A stretch of 64,000 bases of DNA from Macrostomum lignano (GCA_002269645.1 NIVC01000330.1:310001-374000); one strand, 5' to 3'. Shown: positions 57,358 to 62,622, counted from the first letter of the stretch. Notes: generated from the sequence alone by a model not told the origin. Numbers and translations: made by a program.

Positions 57358-58104
57358 CTGTCAAAATGTGATGCAAACAAAAACGATTCAAGCTACTGAC
57401 AGTAGGCTGTATAAGAAAATTTAGCTTAATTTTACAAATATTGAACATAATGTAATGACTGATACATTGATATACAAGTCCCGCTTATAGCTTAGGCCAA
57501 ATCTCTGATTAGAATAAGAATAAAAAATACGCGAGTTAGTATTCTCAATGGAAATGCTCTGATAATAAAATAGTCAAAGCTACATACAGGCTACCCAAAA
57601 AAGCACTCCTGACTCATCATGACTTGGCCTGCTGAGCCGGCTCTGGGGAATAGCGTCATGCCTCATCACGTACTAAGCACACTCGTATTAGTAGAGAAAG
57701 AGACGGAAAATCCATATTGGGGGGGGGGCAATTCAGCCCAGCCCAGCAGACCGGGCTGGTGGTTGGTAGGGAGGGCCGATGAACTTTCGCAGACAGAAAC
57801 GGTCCCCGGTCTCGCCATCCTTTTTTGCCTTATCTAAATCCGTATTACTAGGCTTGGCTGGGCCTGAATCCCAGCCAGCCTTACCCCGAATTCGTTCGGG
57901 AGCCAGGACTGAAAGGAGACGCTCTAACGGTGGCGAGCGAGAGCTAAAACACGGAGGGGCAGAAGATGGCGGGGCAGCTGTACACTCTCTAGCACCCGCG
58001 CGTGCCCGCCTGTACAGGCAGTGTAGCGGACAGCAATGAAGGAGAGAGGCTGGCTGGCTGGGTAGGAACAGTTGCCAGCAAATGAACATCAGCAAAATCT
58101 ACCA

Positions 58105-58943
58105 GTAAGTAGTTTCGAAAGCCTTGAATTGAACAGCGCAATCATTCGCTTGCTTAAGCCTCTCCGCTGTCTGCTTTCAGTTTTCACTCACTCTCTGCGT
58201 GCTAACCGTACGCGGAGACTCGTAAAATTCTGAATCAGGGCCGCAAAGTAGTTTAAAACAGTGAGAAAGGCTTGAAAGTTAAAAGGTTGGATACATTTCA
58301 GTGTGTATTGATAATTATTTGTAGTGCGGCTACAGACTCCAGTTCAGAGCCATCAGAAGCCGTTAATTTGCAACGAGAAGTCTGCTAACAAAGGTAAGAT
58401 AATATGAATTTTGATTATAACACCCGAAACAGAGAAGTGAATGGTCGGCTGTTTCTGCATTTTGCTGGGTTAAACTTCGGAACTTAGCTCTGAAAGCTAG
58501 TGGTATTAATTTATAGCAAGTGGTTGAGTATAGATTGGGAGCTATCTAGAAAAAGGAACCGGAGAAAGATAGAAGATAGAGAGGAAATAAAAAAGAGAAC
58601 AGGCCGAATTTAGGCTCGAGGCGGAACTAGGCTGTCTCACAGCTCGTGAACAGGCCGCTGAATATCGATCGATCTCTTTCTAGGGCTGGTGGAAGGAGGT
58701 GGAGAGAAAAAGGAAGAGATGAGGAGGCGAAACTAGGGATTGGAGAAAAAGAGAAGAGAGAAAATAAGATTGAGGAGCAGGCGGGATAGGGTAAATACTC
58801 GTAGTATTGGAGCAAGGGGGAATATCGATGCTGCTGAGCATAGTACAGCCTAGGATTATACTGCACTGGAAATATTTAAACCTCTGAGCTTCGAAACCAC
58901 TAAACCAAAGCCAGAACACTAAAATTGCTTTAAAGCCTTCTAG
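58105..58943 (+). other. Possible 5'UTR intron of KLC (or an SL trans-splice acceptor at 58943)
   Basis: GTAAGT at 58105 and ccttctag| 7 nt before the ATG. Confidence 0.4.
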
Positions 58944-58950
58944 CGCCGAA

Positions 58951-59214
58951 ATGCCGCCCGGCCTGCTGCACGAAGAGATCCTCACCGGGGTGCAGGCGGT
59001 CAAGCAGAGCTTGGCTAGCTTGAAACTAGACCAGCAAGAGAAGCTGCGCCAAGCCGCCGAAGCGGATCATCAGCAGCAGCAGCAACAACAGTCGCCATGT
59101 CTGCGACAGGCGCTAGAGCGAATTGAACAGGGCCTGGATGAGGCCGAGATTCTGGCTGCATTGGCGCAGTACCTGCAGTACAGCGAATCTGAGAAGCAAA
59201 AACTCAAGAGCCAG
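58951..59214 (+). CDS. KLC: Kinesin light chain exon 1 (heptad-repeat region)
   Basis: MPPGLLHEEILTGVQAVKQSLASLK...ESEKQKLKSQ|gtaagc; matches KLC ESEKQKLRAQ. Confidence 0.93.
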
Positions 59215-59555
59215 GTAAGCGGATAACCAGGTAGAGACCTCTCGTATTTGCCAGTTTAAACATGTCTGACTCTCGCGCCAAAAACAATTTGGTTCGTGCA
59301 TGGATATCGGCCGACGAGCTTGCTATGTGATTCATGCCTATGAGGACCGACTAGGTCAGATGACTAGGCCCTCACGATGTGATAATTAGGCCAGATGTCC
59401 AAGTGTGCAGAGCATACGAGGGTTGTGTTATTACCACATTTCTACCACGGCTCAAAACTCAACAAATGAGCTAAATTTTCCGCTCACTGAGTGAGACTGC
59501 CTTTATCGCGGATTACTCGTACCGCAAAAGTTTAAGATCCATAATTATAACGCAG

Positions 59556-60239
59556 GTGCGCCGTCTAATGGAGGAGAACTGTTGGCTGCGCGAGGAATTG
59601 GCGGAGACGCAGAAACGGGTGCAGCTTAGCGAGGAGGCTCGAGTACAATTGGAGGAGGAGAAACAGCAGCTGCAGTTCATGCAGGAGATGCGCAAATTTG
59701 ACGCCGAGCAGGCGCAGCCGGGTGGCGGCGCCGACAGGTCGGGAGGGTCGCCGGCAGCCACGCCAACTTCGTACAGCCTAGGCGCCGCCGTTGACGAGTC
59801 AGCGGCTGGGAACGGAAGCGGCGGCGGTATGACGCATACAGCCTCCATACCGAGCATGGCGCTTGGCGGATACGAGATACCAGCAAGGCTGCGCACTCTG
59901 CACACCTTGGTGATTCAGTACGCTGGCGAGGGCAGGTATGAGGTGGCCGTGCCGCTCTGCCGTCAGGCTCTGGACGATCTGCAGCGCACGTCTGGCCGGG
60001 ATCACCCGGATGTGGCCACCATGTTGAACATTCTGGCCCTGGTGCACCGAGATCAGGGCAAGCTACGCGAGGCTGCCAACCTACTCAATGAGGCGCTGGA
60101 GATTCGCGAACGGACGCTGGGTATGGAGCATCCGGCCGTGGCGGCCACTCTTAATAACTTGGCCGTGCTGTATGGCAAGAGGAACAAGTACGCTGAGGCG
60201 GAGCCGCTGTGCAAGCGAGCACTGGTCATTAGAGAAAAG
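59556..60239 (+). CDS. KLC: Kinesin light chain exon 2 (heptads, linker, TPR1-3)
   Basis: [16 protein letters not shown]...[20 protein letters not shown]...[14 protein letters not shown]...[14 protein letters not shown]...IREK|gtaagc. Confidence 0.97.
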
Positions 60240-60386
60240 GTAAGCTTTCTAGAGACAAAGAATCGATTTTGAGCAATGCAGTTGCTGTAAATCGAAAAAC
60301 TACTGTCAATTCGCGATTCAAGTACACGTGCACTTTTGGTGATTGAGTTCTCGCTAGTTGCCTGCATTCTTAGTTGGTTTGCCTTC

Positions 60387-60930
60387 TGATTGGCTCTCAG
60401 TCTCAATCTTACTGTCCCTCTTTCCCGTCTTCGCCTCATGATTGGCTGTCAGTTTTCTATCTCACTGTCTCTCTCTTTCCCGTCTTCGCCTCATGATTGG
60501 CTCTCAGTCTCAATCTTACTGTCCCTCTTTCCCGTCTTCGCCTCATGATTGGCTCTCAGTCTCAATCTTACTGTCCCTCTTTCCCGTCTTCGCCTCATGA
60601 TTGGCTGTCAGTTTTCTATCTCACTGTCTCTCTCTTTCCCGTCTTCGCCTCATGATTGGCTCTCAGTCTCAATCTTACTCTCCCTCTTTCCCGTCTTCGC
60701 CTCATGATTGGCTGTCAGTCTCAATCTTACTGTCCCTCTTTCCCGTCTTCGCCTCATGATTGGCTCTCAGTCTCAATCTTACTGTCCCTCTTTCCCGTCT
60801 TCGCCTCATGATTGGCTGTCAGTTTTCTATCTCACTGTCTCTCTCTTTCCCGTCTTCGCCTCATGATTGGCTCTCAGTCTCAATCTTACTCTCCCTCTTT
60901 CCCGTCTTCGCCTCATGATTGGCTGTCAGT
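60387..60930. repeat. 52/54-bp minisatellite in KLC intron 2
   Basis: About 10 units, each starting TGATTGGCT. Confidence 0.93.
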
Positions 60931-61111
60931 TCTCAAACTCACAACCCTGCTTAAGCTTTTCTGTTCCTAGTCTCTTGACTCCTAAAATCAACATTATCTC
61001 TTCTCTCTTCCGACTCCTGATTGACTAGCAGTTTTCTTCCTTAATTTTAATCGCAATAAATTAAAAATAAATATTAATCATTCCCGCAAAACGCTAATGA
61101 ATTAATTCCAG

Positions 61112-61654
61112 ATTCTCGGCTCCGACCACCCGGACGTAGCAAAGCAGTTGAACAACCTGGCCCTGCTATGCCAAAATCAGGGCAAATACGGCGAAGTAGA
61201 GAGTTATTACAGGCGAGCATTGGAGATCTACGAGACTAAGCTAGGCGAAGGCGACGTCAACGTGGCCAAGACTAAGAACAATCTGGCATCGGCCTTCGTC
61301 AAGCAGGGCAAATACGACAGCGCCGCCCAGCTGTACAAGGACGTGCTTACTAGGGCGTACCTGCCCGACGAGAACGGCCGAACAATCTGGCAGCTGGCCG
61401 AGGAACGCGAGTCAGGCGCGCCTGTTGGCGCCAAACGTAGCGGAGGAGGCGCCAGGCAACCGTTGGACTGCAGTTTGGCGCCGGGCGCCGACGCTCAAAC
61501 CGTGGCCACAACGGTGCGAAACATGGCGGCCCTGTACAGGCGCCAGGGCCGGTATGCGGCGGCGGAGACAATGGAGGAGTTCCTATACAGAGGCCTGCAG
61601 CATAGCCAGCAGCAGTTGCTATGGACTAGCGGAGGCAGCGGCATGTTCAAGTGA
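61112..61654 (+). CDS. KLC: Kinesin light chain exon 3 (TPR4-6, short C-terminus)
   Basis: ttccag|[26 protein letters not shown]...[11 protein letters not shown]...[15 protein letters not shown]...GMFK*; total 496 aa. Confidence 0.96.
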
Positions 61655-62085
61655 TGATAGTTAGTGACAATTTCACTAGTTGACTATTGAGAACCAGTTC
61701 TCAAGCTTAATACATTAGCGATATAACAAACAAAAGTTACAACTCTAAAACATGGCATACGGCTTATTGATTCAACATTCTTGCCCGAGATTAACAAACA
61801 GACTGAATAAAAAAAGCGTGTTATGCATTATGAAACATTTTATTATACTTGCACTTGTCTGCTTCGAGAATGCAACTAATCGAATTTATCTAAAAATACA
61901 AACGTGTTTATTTACGCCTATTGGAATCAATTTTTACAAATATTTTAATCGTCAATAAAAGCCTAAACAAGATCTATAAGTACAATACTAGCCTACTGAT
62001 AGTAGTTAGGCTAAATTTTCCAAATTAGCTAAATTAAATATGGAGACAATCGTCACTACTAGGATAAGCTTTCAGTTACAATCAA

Positions 62086-62535
62086 AGATACTAAAATAAC
62101 TAGATGGGCCACTCTGGCATAAATACGTAGTAAAACAGCTTTCTACTTCCAGCTCAGTAGCAAAGAAGAATACATAAGCTATTTTATAAAAATCAAGGGC
62201 AAGGCAGCTGAAATGACTTTGATAAGTTTAGAAGCCCAAGCTTGCAGGCGTAAACAACTTGCTAATTGGTTCAGCCATAATGTACATTAGCCAGTCTACT
62301 GAAATGTACATGGCAGCTTTAGGCTGGAATTCCGAGGAAGGCAATAAAATTGGGGCGGGGCGGGGGGTGGTAGTGTGGAAAGGCTCAGTTAGATGGTTTA
62401 AGCTGGGGGTAAGAGCCAATAAATTGAGCCTTGGCTTTAAAAATATATAAAAATGCTTCTGTTTTACTTACTACTGAACTGAAAGTAGTTTACACGTAAA
62501 TGTGCTGAGTGGCCCATCTAGTTATTCTAGTATCT
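62086..62535. mobile_element. MITE-like inverted-repeat element
   Basis: AGATACTA(A/G)AATAACTAGATGGGCCACTC at both ends in inverted orientation, decaying inwards. Confidence 0.65.
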
Positions 62536-62622
62536 GTGGTTACAATACTTCGGCCTACTGATAGTAGTGCGATATAAAAAAGTATCGACAATAAAAAAGC
62601 ATCATAAAAAGAAGAAAATTAC

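Follow-up and report, generated by a model that had tools for sequence, protein, structure and literature searches.

In this study, we characterized a kinesin light chain (KLC) gene of Macrostomum lignano that lies on the opposite strand within a single intron of a larger gene, here called the host. The window analyzed is a stretch of 64,000 nucleotides (nt) of contig NIVC01000330.1 (GCA_002269645.1, positions 310001-374000), and coordinates are counted from its first letter. The KLC coding sequence (CDS) is wholly contained in one host intron, and the host splice across it is part of an annotation derived from RNA-seq. The locus is a real opposite-strand nested pair; we consider it probable that it is made of two independent transcription units, that the nesting is most likely incidental, and that the host product is a tail-anchored, adaptor-like protein. 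An earlier note on this DNA had proposed a KASH/nesprin-like host that serves as cargo adaptor for the nested motor subunit, the two being co-regulated for nuclear positioning; such adaptor-motor coupling and co-regulation are conjecture.

On the minus strand, exons 62838-62788, 62699-62623 and 57357-57127 join into a single open frame of 119 amino acids (aa; LECDLQEAQDWLDTANENRIKVPPDVTMLTSEQKTELLRSVQ followed by AREEEIQSRLKALD), and each is bordered by an AG acceptor and a GT donor. Seven further host exons follow, and the chain of 10 exons in the window, with AG acceptors throughout and GT donors on all but the terminal exon, closes with a TGA at 34488-34486. The window-encoded product of 1,037 aa is identical, with zero mismatches, to aa 232-1268 of GenBank PAA85394.1 (BOX15_Mlig019917g4, 1,268 aa, M. 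lignano, contig NIVC01000330.1), whose exons 1-4 fall past position 64000, outside the window. With these borders, the open frame and the exact protein match, the in-phase splicing of the three exons described in the earlier note is confirmed. The length of the host gene, measured in a paralogous locus (L001), is ~44 kb.

Support for the junction 62623->57357 consists of transcript-derived gene models. The GenBank annotation of the assembly was derived from RNA-seq by means of StringTie, TACO and a de novo transcriptome (PMC5730564). Older models from a separate source (UniRef-only P0130, P0123 and P0121) likewise bridge the KLC-containing intron: P0130 has the identical junction, P0123 omits one of the two small exons and P0121 omits both, and every one of them joins upstream exons to exon 7. 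We regard the junction as well supported, since the annotation is RNA-seq-derived, the older models bridge the intron, and a predicted helix of the host protein runs uninterrupted over it. Could exons 62838-62623 and beyond nevertheless belong to another gene, the join to 57357 being a chimeric transcript assembly? Overlapping units may be merged by assemblers, polycistronic precursors are numerous in M. lignano (PMC5730564), and the older models disagree on the small exons. Against such an artefact, which we judge very improbable, stand the canonical splice sites and preserved frame, the occurrence of the junction in both the GenBank models and P0130, the bridging to exon 7 by all older models, the three predicted helices around the junction as one spectrin-like unit, and the absence of any evident alternative start or stop for a separate gene.

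The nested gene is, by the sequence of its product, a canonical kinesin-1 light chain. Its CDS (58951-61654, plus strand) consists of three exons with GT/AG introns and encodes 496 aa; the outer ends are those given in the earlier note, whereas its inner exon ends were 1-4 nt off, and its placement of the whole CDS in a 5.3-kb intron holds (5,265 nt). The gene corresponds to PAA85392.1 (496 aa), an exact-sequence match on NIVC01000330.1 within the 1,268-aa host gene, and UniRef A0A1I8JCJ5 ('Kinesin light chain', Macrostomum lignano) is a 100% match to the product, with PAA85392.1 in the same 90% cluster. An alignment with human KLC1 (9pmb_C) extends over residues 8-478 (E 8e-154); identity to molluscan, annelid, arthropod and vertebrate KLCs is 52-60% over the full length, and Pfam gives strong TPR matches (TPR_10/TPR_12). 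The protein has the order expected of a light chain, namely an N-terminal heptad repeat (heavy-chain binding) and then six TPRs. The TPR domain was modeled by AlphaFold2 with pLDDT >90, and the groove residues that are invariant among 45 KLCs are all kept. The LFP-acidic autoinhibitory motif, shared by human KLC1 and the consensus of 45 KLC homologs, was not found in the linker of the M. lignano KLC, where human DDLFPNDEDD pairs with an unrelated Gly/Ser/Ala-rich stretch. Downstream of the KLC stop, AATAAA/ATTAAA poly(A) signals occur from 61806 on, still within the host intron.

A retrocopy inserted in the intron was considered and ruled out, the KLC gene having two introns, one at a position common to the annelid gene. 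The second intron, between REK and ILG, has a positional counterpart in the Lamellibrachia gene, and we therefore take the KLC for an intron-poor ortholog rather than a retrocopy. It is unusually compact, with 3 exons in 2.7 kb vs. many exons spread over 34-41 kb in the annelid and bivalve genes compared. A 52-nt tandem repeat of ~10 copies (60387..60942) lies in KLC intron 2, its unit containing TGATTGGCT, an opposite-strand CCAAT box; it could be a regulatory array or merely a satellite. No second, non-nested M. lignano KLC was seen among the best 120 matches, which is not proof of absence.

The host product has the topology of a KASH protein. The only hydrophobic 19-mers of PAA85394.1 lie at aa 1223-1254, peaking at 1229-1247 (VLILLGCCCCGLLMLLALL), which places a single transmembrane helix at the extreme C-terminus, and an AlphaFold2 helix at residues 996-1018 of the window-encoded protein coincides with this segment. 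It is followed by a short terminal luminal peptide of 21 aa (QAAGSADWQLVSISQPNGAPY). Luminal KASH peptides are typically 20-30 aa long and end in PPPX (PMC3777164), and the short KASH domains of UNC-83 and KASH5 measure ~17-20 aa (PMC6727767). The host tail, however, ends in P-N-G-A-P-Y, with one proline ahead of the last residue. No Pfam KASH (PF10541) match was obtained at E<=10 with the last 82 aa or with the entire host protein, and no KASH peptide chain was matched in a PDB sequence search with the tail. The 'KASH-like terminus' that the earlier note placed at 34486 is thus true as topology only: the exon chain, its TGA and the tail anchor are as described, but the PPPX end and the KASH profile are lacking.

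The sole Pfam signal in the host, among exon products and full-length PAA85394.1, is a Syntaxin N-terminal match below the cut-off (E 0.0016-0.14). A HMMER/phmmer search with the 1,037-aa protein against 1.84e9 representative proteins returned only its own models and no homolog outside M. lignano, and a search with the putative exon products likewise gave M. lignano models alone. The UniProt name 'KASH domain-containing protein' was dropped as evidence, as it is also carried by truncated models without the C-terminus; names given to fragments of this one host gene (P0121-P0133) conflict, ranging over KASH, PDZ, GAR, BZIP and uncharacterized. In one older model, P0133 (1,414 aa), ~900 unrelated N-terminal residues, some resembling antisense host exons, are fused to KLC.

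The earlier note had also read the exons on both sides of the junction as one spectrin-like repeat, for which the yardstick is a three-helix unit of about 106-120 aa. In single-sequence AlphaFold2 modeling of the host, which had a low mean pLDDT of 44.6, helices were predicted at residues 2-18, 31-67 and 74-126 of the N-terminal block (pLDDT 50-67), and helix 31-67 spans the exon 6/exon 7 junction unbroken in this low-confidence model. In the predicted layout, three helices are accompanied by disordered stretches of ~330 and ~110 residues; seven long helices then precede the transmembrane helix, and the tail is coil. The five best Foldseek PDB matches were all spectrin repeat 1 of utrophin or dystrophin (E 0.04-0.8, not significant, none <=0.001). 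Because the host model is of low confidence, these matches are merely suggestive of a spectrin-like fold in the helical blocks. No Pfam Spectrin (PF00435) match was found in the host even at E<=10, and when the N-terminal block and the C-terminal helical region were searched against PDB sequences, no spectrin-family chain and nothing meaningful came up. For the spectrin-like reading of the earlier note, the evidence from helices and fold matches is weak.

Given these results, the host may be no KASH protein at all, but a tail-anchored protein, coiled-coil or helical, that is specific to its lineage and resides in the endoplasmic reticulum (ER), Golgi or another membrane, its apparent link with KLC being a coincidence of topology. 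We give this alternative appreciable weight, though less than the adaptor-like host that we favor. It accords with the missing KASH and Spectrin profiles, the single proline where PPPX is expected (PMC3777164), the lack of homologs among sequences and among solved structures, the sub-threshold Syntaxin signal and the unreliable UniProt name. On the other hand, a short luminal tail of the form NG-x-P-x with hydrophobic residues upstream has more in common with KASH than with the tails of SNAREs or golgins, fold comparison points first to utrophin and dystrophin spectrin repeats, and the spectrin-like repeats of UNC-83, too, were recognized from an AlphaFold model (PMC11908248). On balance, the most plausible role for the host would be that of a nuclear-envelope- or ER-anchored adaptor, since its architecture resembles that of the short-KASH motor adaptors UNC-83 and nesprin-4.

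Nesprin-1, -2 and -4 and UNC-83 bind the TPR domain of KLC by LEWD/EWD motifs (PMC12581424), and the recruitment of kinesin-1 by KASH proteins through this binding, on which the earlier note relied, is borne out by published work (PMC12581424, PMC11908248). Host exon 11 is strongly acidic (20 D/E vs. 2 K/R in 67 aa) and contains the motifs QLWD and LQWE, 27 residues apart. A search of the host for [L/M]-[D/E]-W-[D/E] (LEWD/EWD) found only the near-motifs DQLWDH and HLQWEA, where L or Q, rather than an acidic residue, precedes W. In whole-protein shuffles, at least three W[DE] occurred in 26%, and a close pair in acidic context in 3.7%. When the acidic exon was fused to the KLC TPR domain in AlphaFold2 (45-KLC alignment, without a positive control), no confident docking was obtained (peptide pLDDT 38-46). 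Of the adaptor proposed in the earlier note, then, the tail-anchored topology and UNC-83-like layout survive; LEWD/EWD and the KASH profile do not, and the AlphaFold2 run lends docking no support.

These features bear on a functional module in which a divergent short-KASH host recruits kinesin-1 via a KLC from its own intron, with their expression coupled. For example, a bidirectional KLC promoter might give rise to a short form of the host in which the acidic tryptophan motifs, the transmembrane helix and the tail are retained; a nested gene is able to induce a short host transcript, as in ceh-10/polq-1 (PMC12274878). The tail-anchored topology with a tail in the UNC-83/KASH5 range, a C-terminus whose NG-x-P-x resembles NGPPPx, the mirroring of UNC-83 by spectrin-like blocks, disorder and an acidic tryptophan motif, the pairing of two W-[D/E] motifs in one acidic exon and the retained groove residues of KLC are all consistent with such a module. 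Nonetheless, we think it unlikely, as the host has neither a KASH profile match nor a PPPX end nor an EWD core, the fused peptide was modeled with low pLDDT, the motif statistics are modest, the host is without a homolog outside M. lignano, the KLC loci of four other spiralians show no nesting, and nested pairs are usually less co-expressed than neighbors (PMC12274878). In its complete form, the proposal is that a divergent short-KASH host ending in NGAPY recruits kinesin-1 via the QLWD/LQWE exon and the intron-encoded KLC, that a bidirectional KLC promoter drives the short isoform, and that the whole is one co-expressed nuclear-positioning locus, an antisense counterpart of ChAT/VAChT; this complete form we consider unlikely as well.

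The M. lignano pair exists in three copies with adjacent accessions (PAA68287/68288, PAA85392/85394 and PAA80329/80331), and the nesting is annotated in all three. The copy compared in detail, L001, has the same nesting in 95-99% identical DNA and the same retrotransposon insertion, and 180 Mb of the M. lignano assembly is duplicated at >=95% identity (PMC5730564). Since the copies are near-identical recent duplicates with a retrotransposon in common, they provide no independent evidence of conservation. In other species, KLC was not nested in any called gene in Lamellibrachia (34 kb locus) or Pinctada (41 kb locus), and no overlapping gene was called at the KLC of Trichobilharzia or Mesocestoides, where both contigs are short and fragmentary. 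The comparison with other species, a check proposed in the earlier note, lends it no support: at these annelid, bivalve, trematode and cestode loci, no conservation of the nesting was found. Opposite-strand nested pairs are common in animals, with hundreds per genome and 567 (~5% of genes) in C. elegans, and are on average less co-expressed than neighboring pairs (PMC12274878). No mention of either gene or of this arrangement was found in the literature, and no expression data for Mlig019917, Mlig010223 or Mlig025163 were found in the literature or in supplements of two M. lignano papers; with nested pairs less co-expressed on average (PMC12274878), the co-regulated module of the earlier note is unsupported.

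We favor incidental nesting because such pairs are common and less co-expressed, because KLC is not nested at the four other loci, and because the host introns are prone to insertion. The KLC start codon and poly(A) signals lie within the intron, and the gene would form its own transcription unit; its heptad repeat would pair with kinesin heavy chain, and its six TPRs would present the conserved cargo groove. The host, without a detectable homolog outside M. lignano, would be a repeat- and transposon-rich gene for a 1,268-aa tail-anchored protein with a predicted luminal tail of 21 residues. The nesting would most likely be neutral in origin, a compact 2.7-kb gene having come to lie in one of several large insertion-prone introns, and ordinary splicing would excise the KLC sequence from the host pre-mRNA. 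Should the arrangement have any regulatory effect, transcriptional interference would be as likely as co-regulation.

Several points weigh against this account. A kinesin-1 subunit is paired with a product of KASH-adaptor topology, unlike what a random host would offer. The KLC promoter and host exon 7 stand head-to-head, 1.6 kb apart, and divergent transcription could yield a short host isoform. The two W-[D/E] motifs in an acidic, predicted disordered exon are reminiscent of bipartite W-acidic motifs, and so close a pair in acidic context arose in only the 3.7% of shuffles given above. Finally, the comparison with other species is weak, consisting of two distant spiralians and two fragmentary contigs. 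If the host were indeed a KASH adaptor for the nested KLC, the locus would be a rare case of a host and a nested gene whose products physically interact, it would provide a compact locus for kinesin-driven nuclear positioning in the transgenic-tractable M. lignano, and it would widen the range of KASH tails past PPPX. At present, it mainly adds one more opposite-strand nested pair, and it draws attention to an orphan tail-anchored spectrin-like protein with a UniProt name that is not to be trusted.

Table 1. Features of the host gene, the nested KLC gene and a retrotransposon in the window.
Feature	Position	Strand	Remarks
Host intron with the whole KLC gene	57358..62622	-	5,265 nt, GT...AG; same intron and content in L001
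Host exon 5 of PAA85394.1	62788..62838	-	First in window; start of spectrin-like block (LECDLQEAQDWLDTAN)
Host exon 6	62623..62699	-	Ends ...LLRSVQ; donor of KLC-containing intron
Host exon 7	57127..57357	-	Begins AREEEIQ...; acceptor of KLC-containing intron
Host exon 8	49500..49677	-	Disordered, Ala/Ser/Gly-rich
Host exon 9	44062..44689	-	Disordered, low complexity
Host exon 10	40353..40714	-	Disordered stretch, then basic helix
Host exon 11	38780..38979	-	Acidic; two tryptophan-acidic-like motifs
DLDQLWDHY motif (W761)	38932-38906	-	Host exon 11
SHLQWEADQ motif (W788)	38848-38822	-	Host exon 11
Host exon 12	35787..36538	-	Helical (spectrin-like/coiled) C-terminal region
Host exon 13	35398..35599	-	Helical
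Host last exon	34486..34920	-	Helix, Ser/Thr-rich linker, transmembrane helix, tail, stop
Host transmembrane helix	34608-34552	-	
Host tail, 21 aa	34551-34489	-	QAAGSADWQLVSISQPNGAPY
Host TGA stop	34488-34486	-	
KLC exon 1	58951..59214	+	ATG at 58951, in-frame stop upstream; N-terminal heptad region
KLC exon 2	59556..60239	+	Heptad repeat, linker without LFP-acidic motif, TPR1-3
KLC exon 3	61112..61654	+	TPR4-6, short tail, stop included
Ty3/gypsy-type long terminal repeat (LTR) retrotransposon	51005..55628	-	In host intron 7->8; 279-nt LTRs, 99% identical

Other large host introns measure 7.4, 4.8 and 3.3 kb and contain an LTR retrotransposon and many satellites and minisatellites. The retrotransposon at 51005-55628 is young, and its open reading frames (ORFs) for reverse transcriptase/RNase H (52199-55360) and integrase (51754-52719) are in differing frames; the same insertion is found in L001 at ~97% identity. 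Although outside the gene pair, it shows that host introns accumulate insertions. A remnant of a DDE_3 (Tc1/mariner-like) transposase ORF (49167-49406, minus strand) lies directly downstream of the host exon at 49677-49500. One 28-nt satellite (GGCCCAGCAACTGAGGATCTGGGAGGCT) occupies parts of two host introns (38009-38760 and 63699-64000), and at least 8 further minisatellite arrays with periods of 4-45 nt are scattered over the host introns of the 34.9-56.9 kb interval.

Elsewhere in the window, four paralogous small-protein ORFs, at 13.5-14.3 kb (plus strand) and at 14.8-15.5, 20.7-21.5 and 22.3-22.8 kb (all minus strand), share the motif PPGPRRLLRCPAEF...VRLQTVRFLRDSELRLDSAGRLWL and look like a local tandem gene family. 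Three of the four combine a signal-like hydrophobic stretch at the N-terminus with one hydrophobic helix; the two that were scanned (14.8-15.5 kb and 20.7-21.5 kb) gave no Pfam match. The gene that follows the host downstream has its start at 25721-27034 (minus strand), which encodes an N-terminal hydrophobic stretch and gave no Pfam matches; its annotated product in the paralogous locus has 671 aa.

Compared with canonical KLCs (human KLC1/2, mollusc and annelid), the M. lignano protein is 52-60% identical and has the heptad repeat, six TPRs and invariant groove residues, but it differs in its 3-exon, 2.7-kb gene, the lack of the LFP-acidic linker motif and a short, divergent C-terminus. As a nested arrangement, the locus resembles ceh-10 in polq-1 of C. 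elegans, where a compact gene likewise lies within one intron of a larger opposite-strand host and the promoter of the nested gene points towards downstream host sequence. Those two genes, however, are unrelated and their nesting is conserved across nematodes, whereas the M. lignano genes are possibly partners and were found nested only in recent duplicates. The classic case of a host and a nested gene that act in one pathway and are co-regulated is VAChT, nested in the first intron of ChAT; the two are on the same strand, share a promoter and an exon, and are conserved from nematodes to mammals. ChAT/VAChT is thus the model for the proposed co-regulation of host and KLC, although in M. lignano the two genes are antisense to each other, have no exon in common, and were not found nested at the other loci compared.

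The KLC genes of worm, fly and human are not known to be nested in KASH genes. As a protein, the host differs from UNC-83 and nesprin-4 in ending with NGAPY rather than PPPX, in having QLWD/LQWE in place of EWD/LEWD, and in the lack of a KASH profile match or detectable homology; their partner is the TPR domain of KLC, and for the host such binding is conjecture. UNC-83 combines spectrin-like repeats and disorder with an EWD motif located in unstructured sequence, a transmembrane helix and a KASH peptide of the short kind (PMC11908248). Similarly, the host is predicted to be tail-anchored, with long disordered regions between its spectrin-like helical blocks. Its tryptophan-acidic-like element is predicted to sit in disordered, acidic sequence, several hundred residues N-terminal to the transmembrane helix, and its luminal tail is short (21 aa vs. 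~17-20; PMC6727767) and, like theirs, is without the Cys-23/EEDY region.

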